This document shows positions 1 to 30,100 of a stretch of 64,000 nt of DNA, one piece after another. The notes under the pieces were generated by a model that was given only the letters and a program-made list of their open reading frames with translations, was not told the DNA's origin and did no database searches. Numbering within the stretch: the first letter of the stretch is position 1; each line of letters starts with the position of its first letter. Position numbers and translations under genes: made by a program. Origin of the DNA: Rebecca billardiae RCC1528 (Eukaryota; Protista; Haptophyta); NCBI GenBank assembly GCA_965240325.2, contig OZ251224.1, positions 124,001-188,000 of the forward strand. Reading direction: 5' to 3'.

Positions 1-799
1 ACACGGCGGTGCCCGTGCGCGCTGCTCCGAGCGCAGCTGCGGCCACCCCGGCGGCATACCGCCGGTCGAGGGCACGAAAACCGATTTTTCGGGAAAATGC
101 AGAGCAGCGGCGCCCGAGCGCGCCCGAGCTCGTCGCAGCACAGTCTCCTGGTGGCTGCGCCCCGTGAAGCCACGCCACGCGGGGCGCTGGCGTGCGCGTG
201 GCCTGCGCCCACCGTGCGCTGCCCGATCATGGCCGTCGACCGCTCCGAGCGCCTCACCACGCGTGCTCGAGCCCACCGATACTGACGCCCGAGCACGGTG
301 CCGGCAGCGCTCGCAGGTGGGCGTCGGAGAAAACACGCCGGCCGAACGAGCTTGAAGCGTCCGCCGCGATGCCAACGGCAGCGGACGACGTGCGCGCCAC
401 CTCGGCGCCAGTCGCCCAGCCCTTGCGCGGCGGTGCGGGCTCGCTCGTTCGCCGCCATCAGCTGCGCGCGCGCAGCCCGATCACTGCCCGCTGGTTCTGT
501 TGTCGAGCAGCTGCGGCCTGCCACGCGCACTGCCGGACATTGAGCCACAGCGCGAGCACGCGCCTCGTCTGGCACGCGCGAGCACTCAGCATCGTGCGTG
601 GCCACCATGACGCGCCCATCTGCGCCAGCAGCGATGAGCACGCCGCCGTTCAGCTCGCATCGGGCTCGCTCGCGACGCAGCAACGCGCGGCCGTAGCGGC
701 AGCAGCGGCGCCGTCGAGCACGCGCAGCAAACAAATATGCAGCGCGGGCGAGTCGACGGTCTGGAAAATGCGCGATCACGCCACAGCAGGCTGGCAGAG

Positions 800-1480
800 C
801 CCGCCCGAGCTGCAGCATGCCGTAGGTGCTGCCCCAAGCTCTCGACTGCCCGTAAGCGGCGGCATGTGCGGCGGCGCCGGCGGCGGCCATGCTGCCACGC
901 CGTTGCGCGCCGCGGGGCGCCGTCGGCACCTCTGTGGTGAAGCGCACAGAGCTCGAGCCCACGGGGGCTGGCGACCGTCAAACCGACACCCCATGACGCG
1001 GGGCTGCGTGCGCCAGCTGCGCGCACTCCGTGGGCCCACCTAGCCCGCTCGAGCAGCTCGCCTTGGGTGCGCGCAGCGGCTCGAGCACACTGGTATGGGA
1101 CGCCTGCCTGCGGTGCCGCCGAGCACATGCGGCCGACGGTCACTCAGCACGGGCGACTCGACGGCGGCGAGCAGGCGCGACGGCCTCGCCGCGCCGCGGA
1201 AAAGCCTGCCCGGGCTGCAGCACGCCGTAGGAGCAGCCCAGCGCCCTCCTCCGCCCTCCAGCTTCGGCGCGCGCAGCAGGCCCGGCGGCGGCCATGCTGG
1301 CGTGCCCAAGCATGAAGATGGGCGCGGCCGGCCGCGCCGTCGCAAAGCGCGCAGAACTCGAGCTCGGGGGGGCGGACGGCCGCCAAACTGGCGCGGCAGG
1401 ACGTGGCACTGCGTGCGCCAGCTACGCGCACCCGCTGCGCCCGCGTGGCCCGTGCGAGCGCCGCGCCTCGAGCACACGCA
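800..1480. repeat. Imperfect tandem duplication, ~405-bp offset, in a non-genic region
   Basis: TGCAGCATGCCGTAGGTGCTGCCCCA (~811) recurs as TGCAGCACGCCGTAGGAGCAGCCCA (~1216). GGCGGCGGCCATGCTG and CTGCGTGCGCCAGCT(G/A)CGCGCAC also recur at a similar offset. No recognisable protein. Confidence 0.6.
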
Positions 1481-2769
1481 GCTGCTCGACACAGCCACGG
1501 CAGTGTGGCTTGTGCGCGTGCACGTGATCAGTCTCAGCTCTGAGGCGCGCGCTCAGGAGGGCTGCGGCCGGGCCGAGCGCGATCTGCGCGGACGGTACAG
1601 CCTGGCGGCTCATGCCAGCCAGCCCAAAGCCCGCTCCGCCATCCGCGTCATGGCGCTCCAGCCTCTCGCGTGCTGCGCTGCAGCCGCGCTCGGCACTAGA
1701 CGTCGCCCAGCCCGCCTTGCACGCGGCTGAGCAGTGGCAGCCAGGCGAAGCGTCGTCGCGGGCGAGGCTGCGCTGGGTGATGCGGCTCGGGTCGGTGGGC
1801 AAGTCGCACCCCGCCGTCGGTCGCCTCCACGCCTCAGGCTCGCTCGAGGTCAAAGACAACTGCGCGGCGCGGCGTTTGCGCGGGCGGGCCGCGGGCGTGG
1901 CGGGGTGTACGCGTGCAATGTCACAGCCTCCCACACAATTTCAGGAGGGTGAGACGCACCGCCAGCGGCACCCGCACACAATCCCACCCTGCGCGAGCCA
2001 CCTGCCGTGTCGACTGAAGCATCAGGCTCGGGCGCAACCGCGGGCGGTGCATGCAAGAAGCTCGCGAAACGCACCGCGCGCGCCGTGAGGGCGAAAGGAG
2101 AGCACCCGTCAGGGCGGCGAGGAACTTGCCCAGCGCCACGCGGAAGACGACCCCAGCCCGCGTCGACGCATAGTCGGGCCCGCGAGCAGCCTCGTCGGTC
2201 TTCGCCGAGTAGATCGCGCCGCGAGCCGAGGCACCGCTCGTTTGAGGCTCCGTCCGCCGCGAAGTCGCGGCTTCCACCCGAGTTCCACTGTCCGGCCGAG
2301 ACCGGATTCGCTGACTCGAGCTGCGGACCGTCCGAAGCGTCACGGAAAATTCCAATCCTGCACTGTGTACATCATGTTCTCATGGCAGCTGAGAGTGCTG
2401 AGACTGAGTCGTCGTAACGACTCGCGTAACTCGTAAGCGTTGTCGTCATCTCCGCCTCCGGTCATCGATGTCATGCACGGCGGAGATGAGACGAGAGCAG
2501 TGTCGAGCCTCGATGCGGATGGGCGGACAAGTCGGGCGCTCGCGCGGCACGCAGCCAGCGGGCACGCGGCGCCGGCTCACGGCACTGCGCGCAGGGCGCA
2601 CGACGATTACTCGTGCGCCGCTGCCGGGTGGCGCGTGTGCTCGGGTCAGGAGGGGGCGAGGCCGCACCCTCGCGCTGCGGCGCTGCTGCGCGCCAGGCAT
2701 GCGCCGCGGCCGGCGTGGCGCGGCGCCTGCGCCTCGCGCGCGTGCGCGCGCGCGCGCCCGGCCTGCCGC

Positions 2770-3771
2770 TCAGTGCGCCTTGACGCTCTTCTGCTTGGGC
2801 GGCGGCGCGCCGCTCGCCGCCCCGCCCTTCGCCTCGCCCTTCCCCTTGGGTGGTGTGTACGCGCTGTTGTAGAACTTGGTGAAGAGGTAGAGCATGCTCA
2901 GCATCACCCAGATCTCGACCAGGCAGATGTGGAACGGGTACACGCCCGTCACTGCGGCCCAGGTGGCGTGGCCGAGGCAGACGCAGAACTGCACGAGCTG
3001 CGCCTGCGTGAGGTACCGCTTCCACGGGCAGCTCCAGCCGAGCAGCGCCATCGTGTAGTAGGAGTACATGAGCACGTGGATGATCGAGTTGAGCAGCCCG
3101 CCAAAGTACGCGTCTCCGCCGTTGCACAGCTTCACGACGCAGAACCACGCCCAGATGAGCAGCACGTGGTGGTACACGTGCAGGAAGGAGACCTGCTGCG
3201 TCTTCTTGCGCAGCACCATCCACAGCGTGTCGAGCAGCTCGACGTACTTGTTGTTGTAGTGCACCCACGTGACAAAGCCGAGCCGGAAGCTGTTGGGGCC
3301 GAGGTCGACCTTGTTGCCCACTGCGGACATGCCCGCGCGCCTCACCTCGAGCACAAACGCCACCACGCACCACACGTTGATGATCACCTGCGCGGGAGAG
3401 AGGGCGGCGCGCGTGTGCCGCGCGAGAGGCGTGCCACGGCTCAGCGCCGCGCGCCCGCGACGCCGCGCGCACGGCGCGCGCGCGCCCCGCGCACGAGCCG
3501 GGCGCGCGAGCGCGCGCGTGGCGCGCGGTGAGACCCGGCCGCGCACCTGGTAGAGGTTGTAGGTGAACATGTAGTCCTTCAGGCCCTGCATCGGCTTGCG
3601 GCCCTCGAAGTATTTGGTCAGCCCCCACACGCCCGTCAGGTAGACGGCCGTCATCACGCACGGCAGCGAGAGCCATGCGGTCGAGTACGCGCCCTTCTCG
3701 TTGTTGATGTTCTCGTGGAAGCTGTTCCGGTTCTGCGAGAGGACGAGAAGGTAGCCCGCCGCCAGCATCAT
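2770..3771 (-). CDS. ELO: ELO/GNS1 fatty-acid elongase, likely delta-5 (C20 PUFA) elongase; exons 3771-3547 and 3387-2770
   Basis: Motifs KYVELLDT, FLHVYHH (His box), HVLMYSYY and LTQAQLVQF. A 159-nt GT-AG intron (3388-3546) removes an Arg-rich insert. The N-terminus MMLAAGYLLVLS resembles Pavlova C20 elongase as recalled. Confidence 0.95.
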   Translation of the reverse strand: MMLAAGYLLVLSQNRNSFHENINNEKGAYSTAWLSLPCVMTAVYLTGVWGLTKYFEGRKPMQGLKDYMFTYNLYQVRGRVSPRATRALARPARARGARAPCARRRGRAALSRGTPLARHTRAALSPAQVIINVWCVVAFVLEVRRAGMSAVGNKVDLGPNSFRLGFVTWVHYNNKYVELLDTLWMVLRKKTQQVSFLHVYHHVLLIWAWFCVVKLCNGGDAYFGGLLNSIIHVLMYSYYTMALLGWSCPWKRYLTQAQLVQFCVCLGHATWAAVTGVYPFHICLVEIWVMLSMLYLFTKFYNSAYTPPKGKGEAKGGAASGAPPPKQKSVKAH

Positions 3772-4511
3772 CGGCAGCCTGCCGAGCAACCGCACCAACA
3801 GGCAGGCGCGCGCGCAGCGCACGCGTCAGCCGCCGGTCCCGACTCGAGCGCGCGTGCGCGCGCGCATGCCGTGCCTCCCCGCGCCGAGCTCGGGCGGTGG
3901 CCGGTCGAGCGCACAGTGGCGGGGGCCCGTGGCGGCGCAGCGCACCAGAGCCCCGCCGTCAGGCGCTCCGCCTCTTGCTGCACCTTGCCCGCTGCGGCCT
4001 TCATTGTCAGCTGTGTGCAGCAGGGAAGCCCTCGCCGATCTGAGGGGAATCCGACGCCGTGGCCCGCGCCTGCTTTTCGACAAGGACCGTCGGCCGCCCT
4101 CGCTGTCGGCCGATTACTTAGGGGAAATCGAGGCCGTACGGCCCTCTGATTGGCTGGCGGGCTTGACCGCCATCGTGGGAGCTTCTGATCCTTGCAGGCG
4201 CGGGCAACGACCTGCCGAGGTTCCAGCGGAAGGGCCCAGGTGCGGCCGCATCCGCGTGGTCGTTTGTCGTCAGTTGAGCTCCGGAATTTTCAGCAATTTC
4301 CGCGAGGCTTTGGTCAAGGAACTCGGTCTGAAGGGACGATGGCGGATCGGCTCTCTGGGCACAGCCGAATCAGACCTTGATGAGCAGTCCGATCACCACC
4401 CAGGAAGGGCCAGTCCCGATCGGCGGCATGATCGCGATGCGCGCGGGCCGATGCAGCCGACATGATCCCGGAGCCTGACAGCGCTGCACACTTCCGGCGG
4501 CCCGCCGGCGA

Positions 4512-5148
4512 TCAGCCGCCGCCGCCGCCGCCACGCCAACGCTGGAACCACCGGCGGCGCTGCCCGCCTTCCACTTGCTGCGCTGGCGGCTCGTCCGCCT
4601 TCGCTTTGCGCTCCGCAGCGGGCGCGCTCTTGCTCTCGGCCTCTTCCGCCTCCGAGCTGGGGGCGCTCGGAGGCGGCCATGGAGCGGCCTCAGCCTCGTC
4701 CGCGCCGTCCACGCCCTCGGCTGCCGAGCTCGCTCCCTCGGCAGCGCCGGCTGGAGACTCCGGGCTCGCCGGCTGGGCGGGAGGGCTGGCTGGTGGTGCT
4801 GCAGGTGGCGGCTGCTGCGCACGCGGGCGGGGTGGCGGCGCGGCCGGCGGGGGAGGCCGTGCGCGCGGGCGGGAGGGCTGCACTGGCGGTGCAGGGCGCT
4901 GTGCCCGGCGGAGCAGAGGTAGCGGCGGGGGCGGGGCAGCTGGCGGCTCCGGCTGTCGCGGGCCCGCCTGCTTGTCCCGGCGCGTGCGTAGAATGACTTG
5001 CTTGTACGCGCTGAGCGAGCGAGGCGTGTCCTCCGCCTGCCTGCTCGCAGCCGCCCGTGAGCGCTGCGCTGCGTTTGCACTCGCCGCCTGCGCGGCGCGC
5101 CCGGCCCCGGGCGCTGCCGATCCCGAGGTGGCGGCTGGTTGCGCGGCT

Positions 5149-5179
<31 letters not shown>

Positions 5180-8174
5180 GAGCGAACGCAACCGGCGGAG
5201 GGATGGCCGACTGCTCGAAAGCGGCGGTGGGCGCCTGCTGGACGCCCTCGTCGCCCTCTCCACCCTGCTGGGCAGCTGCCTGCTCCATCTCAGGCCCTGG
5301 CTCGGCATCGGCATTGGCGGCCTCCGCCTCATCCGCCGCCTCCGTCTCCGCCGCTGCTTCCGCCTCGGCCGCTGCCTTGGCTGCCTCAGCTTCGACCTCG
5401 GCCTTGGCTGCCGCCTCCGCCTCGGCGCGGGCCGCCTCCTCCGCTTCTGCCTCCGCCTTGGCTGCCGCCTCCGCCTCTGCAGCTGCCTTGGCAGCCTCTG
5501 CCTCCGCCTCCGCCTTGGCTGCCGCCTCCTCCGCCTCCGCCTTGGCTGCCGCCTCCTCTGCCTCCGCCTTGGCTGCCGCCTCTTCCGCCTCCGCCTTGGC
5601 AGCTGCCTCTTCCGCCTTCGCCTTGGCCGCCGCCTCCTCTGCCTCCGCCTTGGCTGCCGCCTCCGCCTTGGCTGCTGCCTCTTCCGCCTCCGCCTTGGCC
5701 GCCGCCTCCTCTGCCTCCGCCTTGGCTGCCGCCTCCGCCGCCTCCGCCTCGGCTGCCGCCTCCTCCGCCTCGGCATTGGCTGCAGCCTCCGCCTCCGCCT
5801 TGGCAGCCTCCGCCTCCGCCTTGGCTGCCGCCTCTTCCGCCTCCGCCTTGGCAGCTGCCTCTTCCGCCTTCGCCTTGGCCGCCGCCTCCTCTGCCTCCGC
5901 CTTGGCTGCCGCCTCCGCCTTGGCTGCTGCCTCTTCCGCCTCCGCCTTGGCCGCCGCCTCCTCTGCCTCCGCCTTGGCTGCCGCCTCCGCCGCCTCCGCC
6001 TCGGCTGCCGCCTCCTCCGCCTCGGCATTGGCTGCAGCCTCCGCCTCCGCCTTGGCAGCCTCCGCCTCCGCCTTGGCTGCCGCCTCTTCCGCCTCCGCCT
6101 TGGCAGCTGCCTCTTCCGCCTTCGCCTTGGCCGCCGCCTCCTCTGCCTCCGCCTTGGCCGCCGCCTCCTCCGCCTCGGCATTGGCTGCCGCCTCGGCCTC
6201 CGCCTCCGCCTTGGCTGCCGCCTCCGCCTTGGCTGCCGCCTCTTCCGCCTCCGCCTTGGCCGCCGCCTCCTCCGCCTCGGCATTGGCTGCCGCCTCGGCC
6301 TCCGCCTCCGCCTTGGCTGCCGCCTCCGCAGCCTCTGCAAGGGCTGCCTCCTCAGCCTCCTCCGCCTCCGCCTCTGCCTTCGCTGCAGCCTCCGCCTCGG
6401 CACGGGCCGCCTCCTCCTCCTCCTCCTTAGCTGCCGCCTCCTCCGCCTCCGCCTCCGCCTCCGCCTTGGCAGCAGCCTTGGCCGCCTCTGCCTCCGCCTC
6501 CGCCTTGGCTGCCACCTCGACACGGGCCGCCTCCTCCGCCTCCGCCTTGGCTGCAGCCTCCTCCGCCTCCGCCTTGGCTGCCGCCTCCTCCGTCTCGGCC
6601 TTGGCTGCCGCCTCCGCCTCGGCACGGGCCGCCTCCTCCGCCTCAGCCTTGGCTGCAGCCTCTGCCTCGGCACGGGCCGCCTCCTCTGCCTCTGCCTCTG
6701 CAGCAGCCTTGGCCGCCTCTGCCTCTGCCTCTGCCTTGGCGCTGGCTGCAGCCACCTCAGCAGCCTTGGCCTCCGCCTCTGCCTTGGCCTCCTCTTCAGC
6801 CGCAGCCTTGGCGGCTGCCTCCGCCTCGGCCTGCGCTGCTGCAGCTGCCTCTGCCTCCACCTTGGCTGCCTCTTCCGCCTCTCCCTCTGCTGCTTCCTCC
6901 TCTGGGCCAGCTCCAGCAGAGGTCTGTCTCGCGTCGTCTGATGCGCTCGGCTCCTCGTCTGCTGTCGCGTGGGCAGCTGCATTGGCCTCGGACTGGGTCT
7001 CTGGCCCTGCGTTGGGCTCCGCCATTCCCACTGTCACATTCGCGTCAGTGTCCTCTGCAGCAGCAGCCAGAGTTGGGGTGTACACGATGCCGACTGTGCG
7101 CATGGCCTTGTCCTCGCGCTCCGCATCCGGCACGTCGTCTTGGTCGCCTCGCCGCTTCTCGAGGATCTCGCCCACGGCGCCCATGGCGCTGCCCGCCGCG
7201 CGCGATGCGCCCTGCGCAGCCCCCCTCGCCACCTTGCCCAGCGCAGCGGCAGCGTCTCCGGCACCGCCGGGCGGCGTGGGCAGCTTGACGCTGCCTAGGC
7301 CGAACGGCAGCGGCCACGGCTCGCCTTCCGGACCCGCCGAGCCCTGAGAGGTGGCCGACGGCGGCGGCGTCGTTGGCGCATCATTGCGGCCGCCCTCTGC
7401 GCCGCCGTCCCCGTCGATGAAGACTGCCTTCACCACTGCACCCACGCCTGCAATGCCGACCAGTTCGATCACGTTGGGCATGGACGGCAGCAGTGAGAGT
7501 GGGAAGCCGCCTTTGGCTGACGGGGAGACCGCCGGCGGTGATGGCGATGGCAGCTTGGGCCCGAGCGCGGAGAAGGGCAGCCCCCGTGGCACGCGCGGCG
7601 CTGAGGGCAGGGATATCTGCGGCAGCTGTGGCAGCTGTGGCAGCGCCGCCGACTTGCCGCTGCTGGGCGAGTCCAGCGGCTCGGGCTCGGGCTCGGGCTC
7701 GGGGGCGGGGCTTGTCGGCGGAGCACTCGGCTCTGTCGGCGTCTCCGCCTCATCCTGCCCCCCTGTCTCCTTCACGCCGCACGCCTCGGGCAGCTGCACG
7801 TCGTCATCGCCCGCCAGCTGCAGGAAGGACTGCAGCTCGGCGCACTGCGCCTCCACGTCCTCGGAGGACCCCGCGGCAGCGGCGTCGGCGATGGAGGCGG
7901 CCCGTTTGCGAAGCTGCCGCCCGATGACCGTGTCATCTTCGTACGCCTTGCGCGAGCTGGCCACCGGCGAGGGCACGTCTGCTGCATGCGCGAGCCCACG
8001 GCCGGGCGGCGCACGCGCAGCGTGGTACGCGGGGAGTGCGGCAGCGGCACCGCCGACAAAAGAGCGGCGAAGCAGCGCTCCGGGCTGGTGCCGAGGCACC
8101 TTGCCCTGGGCCACCACCCGCTCCGCGCATAGCAGGGCCAACAGGGCTGTCAGCGTGAGTGCTGAGCCACGCAT
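4512..8174 (-). CDS. Secreted or organelle-targeted protein with a ~500-aa Ala/Glu/Lys (AEAEEAAAK) helical repeat
   Basis: Signal-peptide-like start MRGSALTLTALLALLCAERVVAQ (ATG 8174), hydrophobic segment VIELVGIAGVGAVVKAVFI, long open frame with synonymous variation among repeats. A possible 5' intron is unresolved. Confidence 0.7.
5380..6890 (-). repeat. Coding minisatellite (27-nt EAEEAAAKA units) with an internal 252-nt block duplication
   Basis: Sequence at 5629 recurs at 5881 (offset 252 nt = 84 aa). Confidence 0.9.
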
Positions 8175-8385
8175 GGCTTCACGACGGCGGACGGCCGTCG
8201 AGAGCTGCTCGAGCGAGCTGTTCAGCACCCAAGCTTGTGGCGATCGAGCCGTTTCACGATTCTCGCGCAGCAGCCTGGTGGAAGGAAGCCAGCGCTCCCG
8301 CTCCCGACTGCTCTCCAGCCGCAGCCCGCAGAGCAGCGCCAGCCGAGCGCGGCGCCAGGGCGAGGCCGTCGGGCGTCGAGGACTC

Positions 8386-10865
8386 ATGGCCGCAGCGAGC
8401 GGCAGCGCGCAGGCCGACGGCGCGCCGGGCGGCTCGGCGCCGAGCGAGGTGCTGCGCATGTGGACGGAGTGTCCGCGCCAGGGCAAGCTCCTCCGCGGCT
8501 TCGTCGCGCACAAGCTGCCCCTCGACGAGCTCAGCTCCGACGCGCTCGGCGTGGACGAGGCGGACCGGTTCACGCCCACCATGCTGATCGAGCGGCAGCT
8601 GCACGCGAAGCAGCCGATCGGGCTGGCGATCTCGCTGCTGATCGAGCTGCCGCGCGTGCCCGCCGGCCCGCCGCCCGCGCCGCGCGAGGCCGAGTGGGAC
8701 GACTGGGACGTCGCGTACGCGTGCGTGCCGTGCGCGGCGCCGCTGCCGCTCGGCGCGCGCGGCGCGGGCGCGCTCGCCTACTCGGAGCAGCTGCCGCCGC
8801 CGCAGCTGGTCGCGCAGTTCGTCGAGCGGTGCGTCGCGTTCTGGCGCGTCGAGAAGCCCGACGCCGCCGACGCCGCCGAGCCCGCCGGCAGCACCAACCA
8901 CCTGCGCGCCATCGGCGTGCACTGCAACACGGGCTTCAACCTGAGCGGCTACCTCATCTGCCACTTCCTCGTGATGACGCTGCACGTGCCCGCCGCGGCG
9001 GCGCTCGGCGCGTTCGCGGCGAGCCGGCCGCCGGGTATCTACGACCGCTCCTTCATCGAGGCGCTCTTCCGCTTCCACCGCCAGGTGCGGCGGCGCGCGC
9101 GCGCGGAGGGCCCACGCAGGGGCGCGCGGCGCGCGGCGGGCGCGCGCGTGCTGCGCGTGACCCGCCGCGCGCGCGCGCGCGTGAGCCGCGCCCTGCGCCG
9201 CGCCCGCAGGCCGTGCCCAGCCCGGACTCGGCGCGCCCGTCGGACTGGGCGCCGCCGCAGACCTGGCCGGCGTGGCACAGCCGGCTGCGCGAGCAGCAGA
9301 GCGCGGCGACGCTCACGGCCGCCGCGGCCGCGGTCGCGGCGGGCGGCGCCGCGGGCAAACGGCCGGCGGCGGCGGTGGCGGTGGCGAGCGGCGGCGGCGG
9401 CGGCGGCGGCGCGAGCGGCGGCGGTGCGCAGGCGCCGAGCGCGAGCGCCGCGGCCGGTGCTGCCGACGGCGCGGGGAGTGGCGCGGCCGCGCGCAAGCGG
9501 CCGGCGCCGCCGCCCGTGCCCGCCTTTGCGCAGCCCGCGCCGCCCGCCGCCGCAGCGAGCGGCGGCGGCGGCGCAGGCGCAGGCGCAGGCGCCAAGCGGC
9601 CTCGCGACGGCGGCGGCGACTCTGCGGTGGCGGCCGCCGCGCCGCTGCCCACGCTCGGCGGGCTGGGCGCGCACGCCGCCGCGCGGCCCCGCCCCGCCGG
9701 CAGCGGCGCCCCCCTCCGCCCCTTTGGCACGGCCGTGCACGGCGGCACGCGCGCGCGCGCCCGGCGCATCTGCTGCCAGCTGCTCGGGCTGCGGCCGCCG
9801 GCGGAGGGAGCGGCGGGCGCGGAGGGCGGCGCGGCGCCGGGCGCGGCCGACAGCGCGCTCGTGCCGCTGCTCGACGCGCGCGCGCCCGAGCTCAGCGCGC
9901 GTGCGCTGCACGGCGCTCTGCGCGAGGGCGGCGACGCCCGCTGGCTTGTGAGCTGGGAGCCGCACAGCGCGGCCTGCCGCGCCGCGCCGCAGGCCGCCGG
10001 CTGCGCCGCCGCGCCCGCGGCCGCCGCGCCGGCCGCGGCCGCGGCCCCTGGCGCGGCCGCGGGCGCGCCAAGCGGGCTGCCGCCCGCGCTGCCGTGCGCG
10101 CTGCTCTGGCTCGAGGGCCGAGCCTTCGCGCTGCTCAGCGCGCCCGTGCGCCCCGCGGCCGCGGCCGCGCCGCCGGGCGCGGACGGCGCGGCCGCACCGC
10201 CTCCGCGCGCGGACACCTTTGTGCTGCCCGGGCTGCAGCTGCCCGGCACGCCCGACCGCTCGCTGCTCGGGGGCACGCTGGTGCAGCCGCGCGCGCCCGG
10301 CGCGTCCGCCTCGCCCCGGCACGCGCCGCCCGCGCGCTGGCGGCTGTACTTGCGCGAGCTGCTCGCCCTCGGCGGCAAGGGCTGCGCACACGAGCCGCTC
10401 GAGCGCAGGCTGGCGCTGCTCGCCAAGCACGCGCTCGCGCCGCGCGCCTCGCTCGCGCGCGAGCAGACGCTGGGCGAGCCCGTCGCGCTGTACGCACACG
10501 ACCATTTCAGGCTGCGCCGCGCGACGGTGCGCGCGACGCGCGCGCGCGCCGCGCCGCACCGCGCCGTGTCCTCCAACCGACCCGCCGCCCCTCGCCCCCC
10601 CCGACCCGACCCGCGCTGCGCCGCGCCGCACTGCTGCCAGTTTGCGCTCGACGAGGTGGCGCCCGCACTGCGCGCGCTGCACGGGGTGGGCGGGCTGCGC
10701 TTCGTGCGCAAGGACGCGCCGCACCCGTGCGCGCGAGCGGCCGGCGCGGAGGCGGAGGGCGAGGCGGAGGCGGCGTGGCACGTGTGGAGCGAGGGCGCGG
10801 AGGGCGCGCTGCCCGAGGCGGAGCTGCGCGCGTGCGAGTGGCTGCGCCTGCCGCCCCCGGCGTAG
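8386..10865 (+). CDS. RNGTT-like bifunctional mRNA capping enzyme homolog (Cys-phosphatase + guanylyltransferase folds) with degenerate catalytic motifs; exons 8386-9084, 9210-10526, 10641-10865
   Basis: N-terminal WTECPRQGK..FVAHKLPL, IGVHCNTGFNLSGYLICHFL and FAASRPPGIY. C-terminal WLVSWE, LLGGTLV, LYLRELLALGG, EPVALY and HGVGGLRF follow the GTase motif order. GT-AG introns of 125 and 114 nt join the frames. Confidence 0.8.
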
Positions 10866-11128
10866 CCCACTCCACTGCCCACGGTGGGGCCGGGCGGTGG
10901 GCGCGCGCGATCGTCACCGCCTCGCCGCGGTCCGGCGAGTAGCGGCGCGCGGACCGTGCACGGGCGAGCGCCGATGCTGCCTGCTCGCCCGCCCGCCCGC
11001 CTCCGCCGGAGGCGGAGACGCGGAGTGAGCGGACTGGCAGGCGGAGTGGCAGCGCAGTAGCCGAGTCCATCACGTCGCTCACAGTCACACTCACATCAGC
11101 TCATCAGCAGCGCAGATCTTCATTATTC

Positions 11129-11132
<4 letters not shown>

Positions 11133-11177
<45 letters not shown>
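11133..11177. repeat. (AG)n microsatellite, ~22 units
   Basis: Direct reading; lies between convergent genes. Confidence 0.97.
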
Positions 11178-11178
<1 letters not shown>

Positions 11179-11455
11179 GACATATATTATGGCGGCGCGA
11201 TCAGTCGTCCGGAGTACAATGGTGAGTAGTCAGACCGCGGAGACGATGACGTCCAAATTCAAAAAGCAGTATAGCAGTCGTCCGATTGATGCCGCGAGAT
11301 AGTAGTGACGAGATTGACGGCGCGGGGTCCGCCGGCGAGCGGCGGCGCGGCGTTGATGATGAGCACGCCTACGCGCGAGGGTCTGGCCGGCCGTGGGCGT
11401 GGGCACGGCGCAGGCGGGCCCCACTGTGGCCGGCGCCGAGCGGCGCCCCTCTCGC

Positions 11456-14419
11456 TCAGGGCGCGCGCTCGCTCGCGCGCGGCGCGGCGCCGCCGAGGCG
11501 CGCGGGGTGCGCGGGCGAGCCGGGCGGCGGCGAGCCGGCCGACGGCGCGAGCTGCTGCGCGGGCTCGGCGGGCCCGCTGAAGCTGACGCCTCGCTCGTAC
11601 CACTCGAGCGCGTCGTCGTCCTCCGCCGCGTGCTCCGGCCCCTCCTCCCACGGCGCGTCGCGCACCGTCGGCATGTAGGAGCGCACGACCTCGTTGAAGC
11701 GCCACACGGGAGCGAGCTGGATGATGTCCGCCAGCCGGCCAAACCCGCGCATCGAGCGCATGCCGCCCGTGTACATGACGTGGAAGGCGTCGATCTGCGC
11801 GACGATCGTCTCGCGCGAGGCGAGCGGGCAGAGCGGGCGCACGTCCACGTCGGCGAGCGAGCGGCCGAGCGTGCGCCACAGGTAGAGCTCGAACGCGCAC
11901 CACAGCCGGTCGAAGAGCGTGTCTCCCAGCAGCACGAGCAGCCGGCGCGCGCGGCAGAGGTACACGACGGTGTGCGCGAGGCGCGGCGTGGGGTCCCACT
12001 GGATGCCCTCGGCGATCGAGGGGTCCCAGCAGACGACGTCGATCCAGATGCGCGGCGCGCGCCCCGTCGCCGCGCGGTGCTCCGCCGCGTACGCGCGCAG
12101 CGCCGCCACGCGCGCGCGCGGCGCGTCCTCGAACGAGTGGATCACGTGGCAGTCGACGACCTCGCGCTCGGCGGCGGCGGGCGCGTCCGCGCCGCCGGCG
12201 CCGTCCGGGGCGGCGGCGTCGTCGTCGAGGGCGAGCGCGGTGGCGCGCTGCACGCGCAGCTCGTGCGTCGACGCGGGCTCGCGCGGCCCCGCCGCCGCCG
12301 CGCGCGCGCGCTCGCCCAGCCCTCTGGGCGTGCGCCCGCGCGCGAGCGGCGCGTTGGCGAGCATCGCGCGCTCAATGTGGCCGAGCGCGTCCTCGCCCGA
12401 GAGGGTCACGCCGTGGTGCACGCGCAGGGCCTCGTCGACGAGGGTGCGCGGGACGGCGGGCGTGTCCGTGCCGTACCCGATCGCCGCGGCGATCACGAGC
12501 AGCGGGCGCGGCACGCTGTGCAGGTAGCTCCCCATCAGCCCGCGCGCGAGGCCGTCGAGCAGCCCGCCCACGCGCGCCAGCCCGCCCGCGCGCGCGCCCG
12601 ACACCGACGACACGGAGGAGGCGAGCTCGGAGAGCGCAGACGAGAGGCGCGCGGGCACGCGCACCCACGCCCAGCGCGCGCCGGCGGTGCCGAGCGCGGC
12701 GCCGGCGAGCCTCAGCGCCGCGCCGGCGAGCCGCCGCTCGGGCCACCCGCCCGGCGGCTGCGCCAGCCCGCTCAGCGCGAGCAGCGCGCCAAAGCACGCC
12801 GTCTCGGCGAGCGCGCGCGAGCGCGGCCGCGCGTGCGCCGCTCGCACCGCGCGCTCGAGCAGCGCGACAATCTCCGAGCGCGAGCGCACGCCCGCGCCGT
12901 CGAGCGGCTTCGAGTCGTACGCCGAGCGGCGGCCGAGCTCGTTCTTGCCCGAGAGGCGGCCGTAGTACGTCTGCGCGCCCGCCGCGCTCGCCACGCTCGC
13001 CGCGCCCGCCTGCACACTCTCGACGTCGGACACGGAGCGGCGGCGCAGCGCGTGCGACTCAGACTTGCCCGCGGTCGCGAGTACCGCCTGGTGGTAGGTC
13101 TGGCGCAGCAGCAGCGCGACCGTGTCGGCGGGGACGGTAAGCTCGGGCGAGAGCAGGAGCAGGTGGCGCACGCGCCGCCCGCCCGCCGCGCTCGCCGCCA
13201 CGCCCACCCACGCGCCGCCCATCCCTGTGAACGCCTCCGCGGTGCTCGGCAGCACCGTCATCAGCGCGACCACGTCGTACGGCTTCACGTAGCCCTCGAG
13301 GTAGGAGACGATGTCCGCGTCCGCGCCGAGCGCGTCGAGGCCCTCGCGCGCGAAGGTGTCGGCGGTGGCGCCGCAGAACGTCTCGAAGTACCACTGCTTC
13401 GTGCACCGCGCGGGCAGCTCGCCCGCGCACAGCCGGCGCCACAGCCCCTCCAGCCCCAGGAACTGCGCGTCGGCGAGGTAGCGCATCAGCGGGCAGCGCG
13501 TGCGCATCGCGAAGGAGCGCGCGAGCTGCATCGGCAGCAGCGGCACCGCGGCGCGCGAGGTGACGCGCAGCTCGACGCCGTGCGCGAAGCACCACGAGTA
13601 CACCGCCTCCGCCGCGGCCATGTCGAACTGGTTGTTCACCGCCTGCCGCCGCGCGGCGCGAGCGAGCGCGCGGGGCGCGGCGGCGGCGCGAGCGGCGGCG
13701 GCGCGTCGTCCGCGGGTGCGCAGAGGCCGTCAGCGCGCGCGTGCGCGCGCGCGCGGCGCGGCGCGCGCGGCGCGCGGCGCGGCGCGGCGCGCGCACAGAG
13801 TCGGGCCGCCAGCCGCCCTCCCCGTCGCGCTCGAGCCCGCCCTGCACCGCCACGGTCGCCACCTTCTCGCGCACGAGCTCGGGCGCGCTGCCAATCACGT
13901 CCGCAAAGTCGCGCATGGAGGAGATGAGGAGCATGGTGACGGAGCGGCGGTGCGCGGTGCGCAGCGCGTCAAGGAGCAGCGTGTCGCCGGGCACCAGCCG
14001 CGCCGTGTCCACCTCGTCGTACCCCTCGAGCTTGTACTCGTGCGGCTGCGTGGTCGTCGCAGAGCCGCGCGAGCCGACGCCGACCGGGATGTCCTCCGTG
14101 TCGACGAGCTGGAAGGCGGCGAGGGCGAGCTTGGCGCGCGCCTCGGGCTGCCCGCCGCCGTTGGCGATCACGGCGCGCACGCGCACCGTGCCCTGCTTGT
14201 GCAGCACCGCCGCCACCAGCAGCGCCTGCCGGGCGGGGGAAGCGAGCGCGCATCGCCAAGCGCGCGCGGCGTGTGAGGGCAGCGCCGAGCGGCGCGGCGC
14301 GCGCGGCGGCTGACGCGCACCTTGAGATCATCCGGGTCCGGCCCAGGGTCGGTCACGATGATCAGCTCGAGCGGAGGCCGGCCGCGCAGGCGGGCCAGCC
14401 ACTCGGCTGGGCCCCTCAT
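11456..14419 (-). CDS. Nucleoside-hydrolase-fold protein (XopQ/HopQ1-like) fused to a C-terminal TIR/HET-like domain; exons 14419-14321, 14225-13797, 13642-11456
   Basis: IIVTDPGPDPDD Asp motif, VAVQGG, spliced PDSAVNNQFD and KPYD. C-terminal DCHVIHSF..RIWIDVVC..LLVLLG..DRLWCAFELY. GT-AG introns of 95 and 154 nt give one continuous frame. Confidence 0.8.
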
Positions 14420-14725
14420 CGAGGCAGCTGCTGCTCGGGCGGCGGCGCCAGATGGCGCTGCACCAGGCGACGCTACCCGGCACGGGCGCTTCGAATAGTG
14501 CCCGTGGCTCATTCTCTATTTGTCCGCGGGTCTTCCGGGTAACTCCTCGGAATACGTCTTCCGCCGAAACCGTTGCGAAAACAGCTTTTCGCCTTTTTGC
14601 GACGGCGGTTTCTCTTTCTTTTCTTTTTCCCGGTTCCGAGTTCCGACGAAGTCATGCATGCCGACAACTCGCGGCCACTCCCTGTCTTCCAGACCAGAGT
14701 AGTAGTAGTAGGATGAACCCCTCTC

Positions 14726-27171: not shown

Positions 27172-30100
27172 TCAGACAAACATGGGCATCTCGTCGTCGG
27201 AGTCCTCACGCTCGACAACGAGTAGTGCTGGCAAGCTGCTGTCGTGCTGGAGCAGCGTGTTCGCGGCCTCGACGCCGCCCAGTGGCTCGTCATTGATCCC
27301 CGCCGCAGCGCTCGGTGTGGGCTCCGCCTCGGCCGCGGCCGCGCTGCTGTTGCCAGCGCTTGCAGTCGAGGGCTCGGGCACCAGCTCAGCGCCTGCGTCC
27401 GGTGCTGCCAGCAGGCTCCCCTCCGCGTCCAGCGCGGCGCGGCGCTCTCCGTGGCTGATGAGCGGGCTCGGCTCGGACTCGTCCGGGCCGAGGGCGGCGT
27501 CCACGCTGCCGGGCGATGAGCGGCGCATGCGGCCCGGCGTCAGCGTCACTATCTCGTAGACGGTACGAAGCGCGCCCTGGGTCCACTCCTTCGTAGCGGT
27601 GCCCGGGGCCTCAGCCAAGCCGTGGGCGAGGTGCGCACCGCCCTCGGGAGGCGAGTGCACGCGCGGGGCGGCCGAGCGCACGCTCGGGGTCGAGCCCAGC
27701 CGCCAGCTGAGGCCCGCGAGGGCGGCGGAGATGGCGCCGCGCACGACGGCGTTGAACGCCTCGATCGCCGCGGCGGCGTCCTCCAGCCCGCGGCTCTGCC
27801 CGCGCATCCGCAGCTGCGCGGTGCTCAGCCCGCTCGGCGCAAACCTCGAGACGATTGCCTCCATGATGAGTGCGCGGTCCGCCGGCACCGACGCCTGCGC
27901 GCCGCGCATGTCGAAGGAGGTGAGCGCGCTCTCTACGTCCTCGGGCGCGCGGTTGAGCGCGCGCAGCAGCCGCTCGCGCTGCGCGAACGGCATCGCCAGG
28001 TGGAACGAGCCGCCGCCCGCGCCGCTCCGCGCCCTCGGCCCGGCGCGCGCGTCCCCCTTGAACGACTTGCGCCCCGCGCCGGGCGTGCTCAGCCCGCTCA
28101 GCACGAGGTGCGCGTGCATGATCTCGAAGAGGCACCACATGCGCGAGAGCGCCACCGCCGCGTCGTACGGGTCGAGCACGAGCACGACGTGCCGGATGTG
28201 CCGGATCACGCCCGCGATGTGGATCACGTCGGACTCCACGCGGTGCTGCCGGATCGAGAAGATGCTGCGTTGGGCAGGCGGGCAGGCGGCGGTGGCGGCG
28301 CACGCGCGTGGCTGGTGAGCACCGGCGCGCGCGCTCGCTCGCGGCCGACGGCGCGCGCGCGGTGGCGGGGGGCGCGTGCGCGCACTCGATCCACAGGTAC
28401 TGCTTGTCCGGCCTGAGCGCGTGCAGCTGCATGTGCTGCTCCACCGCGTCGATGAGCCCCCTGAACGTGCACGCCTGCGCGTGGCTCACAAAGAGGGTGG
28501 CGCGGTGCACGCCCAGCGTTCCGTCGGCCGTGCGCGCCTTGCGCTCGCGCTCGCACAGCGAGAGATGGCTGTCGGCGGTCAGCTGCGAGACAAGCTTGGA
28601 GACCGAGTAGGTGGGGTCGTCGGGGTCGATGCCGTTGTCGTCGGCGAACTCGCACAGGAACGCGAGCGACACGCCCAGCGTCAGATGCTCGGGCAGCGCG
28701 CCCTCCCAGCTCGAGGGCGGCGCCGAGGCGTGCACGCCATCGCGCGGCGCGCGCTGATGCGAGTCGGGCGGAGGGCACGCTGCGCACTCCGCCAAAGCCG
28801 GCGGATGGCGCAGCGGTGGCAGCCGGTTCGAGCGAGTAGCGGCGCCACCGAGCTCAGACATTGGCGAAGTGCTCTCGCTGCAGATCCTCAGCTCGTGCCT
28901 GGGGCCGCTGTACTTGTGCCTGGCGGGGAAGCGCGCGTGCGCGGGCGAGCCCCAGTCGGCGCTGTGGGGTGCCTGGGCGGCAGCGCTCGCTGCAGACACA
29001 CGCGCGGGCGTCTCCGCGGTGGGGCCGACGGGCTCCGACGGGGTAGGCGGCGGGAGCGCGTCGACGCTGCAGGGCCGTCGCTGCCGCCGAGGAGCGAAGC
29101 CGAGCTCGAGCAGCTTGTGCGCGTGCGACGTCGGGCTGTCCGGTGAGACAGCCGTGATGCGCTCGGACGACTCGCTCGCCCGCGAGGGCTGCAGCGCGCG
29201 CACGCACTTGCACAGGCGCGCAGCGAGGCACGCGTGCACACATTCGAGCGGCCCGCGACGGATCGGCTCGCCGATGGGCTCGCACACGGGCAGCTGCGTG
29301 ATCATCCGCACCGTGTAGAGCAGCGTGAGCGCCACGTGCACCGCCAGCCTGCGCTCGGCGCCGAACACCGACCAGGGCCACAGCGTGCTGACCAGCATGA
29401 TCACGCACGAGAAGCCGACGGAGCGCCACGCGTGCCGGCTCAGAGACGCGCGCACCGAGCAGGGCGTGTACGTGACCTGCTGCAAGCCCGCCGCGCGGAC
29501 GGAGCGCAGCGCCGCCACCGAGAGCGCGAGCACGGCGGCCGGCTCGACCAGCGTGATCAGCGCGACGCGCACAAACACGGCGGGCCCGCGCGCGCGGTTG
29601 CTCGTCTGCAGCAGCGTGCTGATCGCACCCTCGAGCACGAGCAGGCAGCACGTGATGCCCAGCAGCACCCGCGTGCACGCGCCCTTCCTCAGGACGAACG
29701 AGGCGAGCCTCGACCCCCGGCTGCCCTCAAGGAAGTAGACTGCATCGTCAGCCGCGGGCGCGGCAGCGTGCGTGGGAGCGGGAGCGCGCGGGGCGCGTGA
29801 GTTGGGTGCCGCGAGATGGCTCGCGGGCGCTGCACGCAGGCGCAGAGCAGAGCCGCGCGCGCAGCCCCGCCGCCACTACGCGCGCGCACCGCAGAAAGCA
29901 GCCGTCGCGAGCGACGAGAGCGCGCTGCACGGCGCGAAGAGCATCTGCTGCATCTGGAACCACGTGATCTCCCGCGGCACGCGGAGCATCATCGCGCCGA
30001 GCAGCAGCAGCAGCAGGCTGCCCAGCAGCGAGAAGGAGAGGATCATGTGCGGGATGCTGAGCTGACCGCCCGAGTCCACGCGCCAGAACGCGAGCAGCCG

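Follow-up and report, generated by a model that had tools for sequence, protein, structure and literature searches.

A stretch of 64,000 nucleotides from the haptophyte Rebecca billardiae RCC1528 (contig OZ251224.1, positions 124,001 to 188,000; the window) carries on its minus strand a three-exon gene, 14419/14512..11456, whose predicted product of about 904 amino acids joins an N-terminal nucleoside hydrolase domain of the XopQ/HopQ1 type to a C-terminal domain that, according to its structural model, adopts the TIR fold. To judge from sequence comparison, the fusion of these two domains is the rule in a large family and not an oddity of one locus, and what is new here is a copy free of the membrane block that the family otherwise bears. 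TIR-type domains are the kind that makes nucleotide immune signals. The reading that we favour, if tentatively, is that the gene encodes a self-contained nucleotide-signalling unit in which a TIR signal maker would be coupled to a built-in XopQ-type breaker or converter of that signal, as part of the immune or cell-death repertoire of the alga.

Structure and coding signal of the fusion gene

All features of the gene lie on the minus strand and are given in window coordinates. Motif positions and splice signals place it in one intact locus, without a stop or frameshift and with both splice sites intact. The coding part of exon 1 (14321..14419) runs from the likely ATG at 14419 to ...TDPGPDPDDLK, where a GT donor follows. 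Intron 1 (14226..14320) and intron 2 (13643..13796) are both GT..AG introns in phase 0 and lack codon periodicity. Exon 2 (13797..14225) encodes 143 amino acids of the central XopQ-like nucleoside hydrolase fold, as recognised by phmmer against XopQ and by tblastn with homologues, and exon 3 (11456..13642, including the stop codon) is a single open frame of 728 amino acids, so that the product from ATG 14419 amounts to 33 + 143 + 728 residues. An alternative in-frame ATG lies upstream at 14512 and would extend exon 1 to 14512..14321. The start at 14419 is the likelier of the two because a coding-type GC content at third codon positions (GC3) begins only after it: GC3 is 0.85 downstream of ATG 14419 and 0.65, without coding-type bias, in 14512..14420. 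In homologues the start lies 5-21 residues ahead of the calcium motif.

The motifs TDPGPDPDD, NNQFD, PYD and HSF/WID/RLWCAFE with its Glu, from which the first-pass annotation of the window had proposed a XopQ/HopQ1-like hydrolase fused to a TIR/HET-like domain, were all recovered on the minus strand where it had placed them. TDPGPDPDD (14327..14353) closes exon 1, NNQFD (13622..13636) stands at the start of exon 3 and PYD (13274..13282) follows further on in the same exon, which also holds VIHSF, IWID and RLWCAFE. That both domains belong to one chain, as had been claimed, is upheld by this single open exon, by its uniform GC3 and by relatives that include a complete MMETSP transcript.

Open frames alone mean little at this locus because its GC content is 75-80%, in a window that ranges over 60-85% and drops to 58-65% in the flanks of the gene. 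A plus-strand open frame of 844 amino acids (window 11393-13927) runs antisense to the fusion gene, and several more long open reading frames (ORFs) overlap it. The exon junctions are supported by four independent results. In a single frame, GC3 stays at 0.95-0.99 over exon 2 and the whole of exon 3 up to the stop, a pattern that is missing from both introns. The exons are collinear with XopQ (4kl0), exon 2 residues 4-142 corresponding to XopQ 48-194 and exon 3 residues 1-137 carrying on at XopQ 197-332. The same boundaries are bridged by tblastn alignments of five database homologues. Finally, at two loci of Pavlovales sp. CCMP2436 (L133 and L134) the three pieces are contiguous in one frame, the ends and starts of the exons being adjacent codons. 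The proposal of a spliced N-terminal domain is thus borne out by two GT..AG phase-0 introns, by XopQ collinearity and by the intronless CCMP2436 counterparts. At these loci (L133:6001-9307 and L134:6001-9624, GCA_026770615.1) the hydrolase part is intronless at both intron positions of the fusion gene, a TIR-like domain homologous to that of the fusion gene lies 1.3-1.6 kb downstream of it, and P0006 and P0008, the proteins annotated there, seem to be incomplete.

Identity of the two terminal domains

With single exons or natural full-length homologues as queries, the N-terminal domain is assigned to the HopQ1/XopQ-like clan and not to the housekeeping nucleoside hydrolases. In phmmer searches of the PDB, exon 2 matched XopQ (4kl0, E 6e-8; 7jlu_B, E 4e-6) and the first 137 residues of exon 3 matched XopQ 197-332 (E 2e-8), the XopQ entries 4kl0, 4p5f and 7jlu_B being the sole significant matches of both exons; exon 1 alone found nothing in the PDB because its homologous stretch is only about 20 residues long. 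Together with the column-by-column comparison described below, these matches assign exon 3 residues 1 to about 190 (13073..13642) to the C-terminal half of the XopQ-like domain. The N-terminal domain of the homologue P0001, which is about 50-58% identical to the fusion gene over aligned N-domain stretches, reaches E 9e-26 against XopQ and 7e-3 against the best classical nucleoside hydrolase. Through P0001 the algal TDPGPDPDD aligns with TDPNKDPDD of XopQ, and it is an instance of DxxxDxDD, the defining motif of HopQ1-like proteins, in contrast to the canonical calcium motif DxDxxxDD (PMC11685791). Pfam searches with the three exons taken separately returned nothing relevant, including no match to IU_nuc_hydro (PF01156), and full-length homologues score 35-48 bits against the same model, above its gathering cut-off of 34.2. 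The similarity of the domains of the fusion gene to XopQ and to paralogues in the same genome is, on these comparisons, far beyond chance.

A tree of the N-terminal domain was built by a quick method and rooted on the canonical hydrolase of the alga itself, with a bacterial sample fetched by a short degenerate DNA pattern for TDPNxDPDD and therefore biased towards exactly that motif. The algal clade, which includes exons 2 and 3 of the fusion gene, has 99% support in the Shimodaira-Hasegawa-like approximate likelihood-ratio test (SH-aLRT) and falls inside the XopQ-like group; a plant-pathogen clade is supported at 99% and a clade of Planctomycetota, Myxococcota and Acidobacteriota at 96%. The backbone of the tree is unresolved, so that no direction of transfer follows from it. 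Two further sequences, P0076 and P0077, form a separate XopQ-like group of lower GC content with the motif TDLAKDYDD and a long branch of their own, and may be HopQ1-like proteins of the kind found in fungi or mosses. The one clear canonical inosine-uridine (IU) nucleoside hydrolase of the genome (G000:C17:2159078-2159998) is full-length in a single open frame and matches PF01156 with E 5.5e-35; its branch in the tree has a length of about 9, and its distance from the XopQ-like copies is very large. A role in housekeeping salvage was rejected for the fusion gene in view of this separate canonical enzyme, far from the XopQ-like clade. The outcomes that would have spoken against the fusion as first described, a hydrolase grouping with housekeeping enzymes and a C-terminal domain other than TIR, were contradicted by the tree and by the fold searches respectively.

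A column-by-column comparison of algal and bacterial sequences, whose numbering reproduces the XopQ positions of the literature, was used to trace individual residues. TDPGPDPDD supplies the equivalents of XopQ D116, D120, D122 and D123, NNQFD those of N280 and N281, and PYD those of Y398 and D399; R157, D237, D275, Y292, Y333, Q338, L345, W346, W361 and F366 are likewise kept in the fusion gene and the algal clade. All calcium-binding and catalytic aspartates, among them the equivalents of D120 and D399, are present in the fusion gene and in 15/15 algal sequences compared. XopQ contacts ADP-ribose (ADPR) through W361, F366 and L345 at the base, Y311 and Y398 at the alpha-phosphate and D120 at the sugar (10.1101/2020.08.13.246413). 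Five of these six contacts (L345, W361, F366, Y398 and D120) are kept, Y311 being Pro, and the catalytic core and the adenine pocket look intact; Y181, F319, Y320 and W389 are further XopQ residues that the algal clade does not keep. The leader of a type III effector is lacking, as the calcium motif lies 22 residues after the likely Met, compared with residues 99-172 in the bacterial ORFs, and the two introns of spliceosomal type set the fusion gene apart from a bacterial gene.

The C-terminal domain (11618..12160) matched no Pfam family even at E 10. Within its family, aligned as 26 sequences (the fusion gene with 20 of its same-genome paralogues and 5 homologues from databases; alignment A1), 2/26 members matched TIR_2 weakly (E 0.007) and none matched a Pfam TIR model at threshold. 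An AlphaFold2 model built from A1 has a mean predicted local distance difference test score (pLDDT) of 78, exceeding 88 over most of residues 11-190, and orders the domain into strand A (VDCHVI), IWID, strand C (RRLLVLL), helix C (LWCAFELYLW), DAFHV and FNEVVR; the low-complexity C-terminal tail behind it (11456..11617, with the stop codon at 11456..11458) has a pLDDT below 50. When the model was compared with the PDB by Foldseek, the top 50 matches were all TIR domains, including those of RUN1, RPP1, RPV1, SNC1, ROQ1, SPARTA, PdTIR, ThsB and SARM1. VIA-align, which is independent of Foldseek, placed RPP1 (Z 9.6), SARM1 (9.4), MyD88 (9.3), TIR-1 (9.3), SpbK (9.1) and RPS4 (8.9) in the first ranks, and a shape search of the ESM Atlas returned haptophyte clusters followed by plant TIR-NB-ARC and bacterial ThsB_TIR proteins, with rows carrying PF01582 and PF13676. 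Three independent structure libraries thus agree on a TIR fold for the modelled domain. The original label 'TIR/HET-like' holds in its first half, for which fold and Glu speak, and fails in its second: the HET model PF06985 matched 0/26 members at E up to 10, the word HET appears only in an automatic cluster name of the ESM Atlas, and a HET identity was rejected.

The Glu of RLWCAFE (codon 11888..11890, exon 3 residue 585) falls in the model within the helix at 100-111, directly after the strand at 85-92, and a profile search lines it up with WCQYELY of a Toll-like receptor TIR domain, an alignment that is non-significant alone (E 0.26). Its modelled position is that of the catalytic Glu at the start of helix C, in the WCxxE motif of NADase-type TIR domains. 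The fusion gene carries the full family consensus of the domain, including this putative catalytic Glu, which is kept in 20/36 fused representatives, 87/115 others and 14/20 same-genome paralogues. D26, W109, D138, F140, N170 and R174 are better conserved than the Glu across the family. Downstream of the Glu, the motifs DxF and NxxxR are nearly invariant in the family.

The hydrolase-TIR family and the membrane block

In the same 72-Mb genome the C-terminal domain has at least 113 matches and exon 2 at least 82, and about 55 hydrolase-TIR pairs on the same strand and within 6 kb were counted by eye from the two match tables. The motif TDPGPDPDD was found in at least 13/20 sampled paralogues, motif counts being lower bounds owing to strict patterns. 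An exhaustive profile search with the C-terminal domain yielded 2391 representative clusters with an E-value of 1e-3 or lower, and both domains are present in 36 of the best 151 of these. Among the same best 151, nearly every member of at least 450 amino acids that lacks the hydrolase shows 2-6 hydrophobic segments ahead of its TIR-like domain; a membrane block with a TIR-like domain is therefore the core of the family, and a large subset adds the N-terminal hydrolase to it. The complete MMETSP transcript ORF P0003, with hydrolase, membrane block and TIR-like domain, supports the fusion in a relative at the transcript level. Other relatives have complete MMETSP ORFs that consist of the nucleoside hydrolase (NH) only (P0009 and P0016). 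About 25 more distant NH-like loci of the genome, 30-35% identical to exon 2, have no TIR-like partner and are embedded in open frames of great length (for example C12:2177545-2178177, C1:4195363-4196001, C15:880752-881321 and C16:1320951-1321571); in four such loci, no further Pfam partner was found except a weak EGF-like piece upstream of one.

Between the two domains of the fusion gene lies an Ala/Arg/Gly-rich middle region of about 300 amino acids (12161..13072; in-frame GC3 0.95-0.99) in the place that is taken by the membrane block in its relatives. Hydrophobic segments were located with a 19-residue Kyte-Doolittle window. The first five homologues each have 5-7 peaks of at least 1.4 between the domains, segments scoring at least 1.6 number 2-7 in 18/20 sampled paralogues (the remaining two being unreadable in one frame), and 36/36 fused representatives have 3-6 hydrophobic segments. 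In the middle region of the fusion gene every 19-residue window stays below 1.4, the maxima of two weak remnants being 1.36 and 1.15, and the other reading frames of the region hide no membrane helices. The region is also the shortest, at 302 amino acids compared with 432-959 in relatives. Alignment with the relatives indicates that the amphipathic helix before the first membrane helix and the linker behind the block (IGYGTD...LVDEA) are kept, and that the intervening segments have shrunk and contain Arg, Glu and Asp. Given that the membrane block is absent, the product is probably soluble, and since it has no predicted membrane block the gene is a natural candidate for recombinant expression and for an assay of both activities in one chain.

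Possible function and relation to known systems

From the structure of the gene, its conserved catalytic and ADPR-contact residues and the family around it, we infer a transcribed gene with two enzyme activities. In the proposed mechanism, the TIR domain would cleave NAD+ to an ADP-ribose-type, possibly cyclic, signal, and the XopQ-like domain, situated on that very chain, would break a ribosyl bond of the TIR product by hydrolysis, as XopQ does in converting 2' cyclic ADP-ribose (2'cADPR) to ADPR; this hydrolysis would limit, time or convert the signal. The mechanism is favoured because of what the hydrolase clade does in its single characterised case, because the contacts to adenine and ribose are conserved, and because XopQ-like domains are independently fused to NUDIX in the bacterial sister clade. 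XopQ is reported to dampen the immunity of plants in that it cleaves 2'cADPR, a messenger made by TIR domains (June 2026 preprint, 10.64898/2026.06.15.732069), and the exchange D120N/D399N abolishes its cleavage of 2'cADPR to ADPR (Roth et al., 2026, the same preprint, in which BdTIR and XopQ were co-expressed in E. coli). With this work the idea of a signal generator combined with its eraser, one of those put forward in the first-pass annotation, becomes more concrete. An immune role of the fusion gene is plausible, since in another haptophyte infection by a virus elicits a response of TIR genes (PMC12489294). A gene family that couples this type of hydrolase firmly to TIR, and does so dozens of times within a single algal genome, is independent genomic evidence, from outside the plant-pathogen setting, that both activities are parts of one pathway. 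It also speaks for the use, by microalgae, of nucleotide signals that derive from TIR domains and have their turnover built in.

Several observations weigh against such a signalling unit. Y279 is replaced by Val and Y311 by Pro in the algal clade and R154 and R277 are absent, although all four are invariant in the sampled bacterial XopQ-like proteins, and for this reason the substrate may not be 2'cADPR. The best Foldseek match of the TIR model (7rts) has an E-value of only 5.5e-4 with a TM-score of 0.58 by target, and the model was built on 26 sequences. The TIR Glu is missing in 30-44% of the family (A1, P0078-P0223), where it is replaced by Q, R, L, A or V; catalysis may hence not be the common denominator of the family, many members of which may be non-catalytic unless the family relies on other residues. 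The absence of membrane helices was judged by a hydropathy scale only, and the fusion gene is the only copy seen without the membrane block, which could mean decay.

The foremost alternative, which we regard as unlikely, is a two-step synthesis in which the TIR product is a precursor from which the XopQ-like domain makes the active messenger, linear ADPR or a new ribosyl nucleotide, for a downstream target; in the membrane-bound paralogues that target might be their own helix block. The same structural evidence fits this alternative, the residues of specificity that differ from XopQ leave room for another reaction, and an obligatory fusion across about 55 paralogues would suit substrate channelling. 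The only characterised activity of the hydrolase clade, however, inactivates a signal, the fusion gene has no membrane block on which a messenger could act, and the present analysis points to no receptor for the product.

Distinctly improbable is a sensor or regulator, the integrated decoy of the first-pass annotation, in which the TIR domain would be switched on or off by its XopQ-like neighbour, either when the latter takes up a ligand of ADPR or nucleoside type or when it acts as a lure for a factor from a pathogen, turnover being beside the point. The conserved contacts to base and phosphate of ADPR and the large, fast-diverging family, typical of receptors, would be in keeping with such a function. 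It is weakened by the catalytic and calcium aspartates that persist throughout the algal sequences, and by TDPGPDPDD in most of the sampled paralogues, since a pure binding module would not need their conservation.

No less improbable is a decaying paralogue, in which a deletion took most of the membrane block and left a copy that is non-functional or turning into a pseudogene. This would account for the shortest middle region in the only member without a hydrophobic helix and for the Arg and Glu in the remnants of the first and last helices, and at 78% GC open frames are cheap, as the long ORFs in other frames illustrate. Yet every family-consensus residue that was checked is kept in both enzyme domains, and the coding-type GC3, the open frame and both splice sites have survived throughout. 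An artefact of the gene model, with the domains expressed separately from an internal promoter or start or divided within the middle region by a polyadenylation site or intron that escaped recognition, is very improbable despite the NH-only ORFs of relatives, as one uninterrupted frame with uniform GC3 leads from PYD to the TIR domain and both domains occur together in 36 representative relatives and in a complete transcript.

A wider reading, rather unlikely, would make XopQ-type hydrolases endogenous partners of eukaryotic TIR signalling: algae would have wired maker and cleaver of the messenger into one chain, releasing it as a short local pulse, and the membrane-free copy would be the cytosolic version. 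If this is true, that copy could be a stand-alone pulse generator or a general eraser for the messenger of the roughly 55 membrane-bound paralogues, and the bacterial effector XopQ would mimic an off-switch of host type.

Among known systems, the type III effectors XopQ, HopQ1 and RipB of Xanthomonas, Pseudomonas syringae, Ralstonia and Acidovorax (4kl0, 4p5f and 7jlu) have the fold and the non-canonical calcium motif in common with the fusion gene, which keeps D116, D120 and D399 as well as the ADPR contacts L345, W361, F366 and Y398. Unlike these effectors the fusion gene is eukaryotic, contains introns, has no secretion leader of about 100 residues, lacks Y279, Y311, R154 and R277, belongs to a separate, well-supported clade and is fused to TIR. 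Piechocki et al. (2018; PMC6019455) described HopQ1-like proteins of algae, fungi and mosses, with the algal members in a clade apart from that of bacteria; these proteins are of the same clan as the N-terminal domain and likewise eukaryotic. The word TIR is absent from that study, which describes neither a TIR fusion nor an expansion to dozens of copies. Algal HopQ1-like proteins were thus already known, whereas no paper was found that describes a fusion of XopQ-like and TIR domains.

The NADase-type TIR domains of plants (RUN1, RPP1 and ROQ1), of SARM1 and of bacteria (ThsB and SpbK) appear to have the same fold, with WCxxE after strand C at the start of helix C. Unlike them, the fusion family stays below the Pfam TIR thresholds, has invariant motifs of its own (DAFHV and FNExxR) and a different partner domain. 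A neighbouring seven-transmembrane (7TM) gene (window 27172-29668, minus strand) also has a TIR-like domain at its end, in which LFVSHAQ, YLWIE and SRMWCLFEI occur. It was considered as a close paralogue or tandem duplicate and rejected, as hhalign aligns only the 24-column strand-C/helix-C motif (E 0.039, probability 1%), and by this comparison it belongs to a different subfamily.

Closest to the fusion gene are the paralogues with nucleoside hydrolase, several membrane helices and TIR in the same genome and P0001-P0005 of other haptophytes, in which the same two end domains stand in the same order with domain identities of 35-59% and about 50-58%, respectively; these relatives carry 2-7 hydrophobic helices between the domains, in contrast to the fusion gene with none and the shortest linker. 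Further afield, a Planctomyces-type XopQ-like domain is followed in the same ORF by a full amidohydrolase (L076:3096-6050; PF07969, E 2e-104). In Planctomycetota and Myxococcota a XopQ-like domain is joined, as in the alga, to a second enzyme of ADP-ribose-type nucleotides in one chain, although there the partner is NUDIX instead of TIR and the genes are bacterial. These fusions (L029:1656-3743, L031:635-2692, L059:4060-6318, L060:5658-7886, L088:4775-7171 and L100:3156-5138), with a C-terminal NUDIX domain at E of about 1e-14 that is weaker in L060, suggest that chains of two enzymes acting on ADP-ribose-type nucleotides exist in free-living bacteria known from metagenome-assembled genomes.

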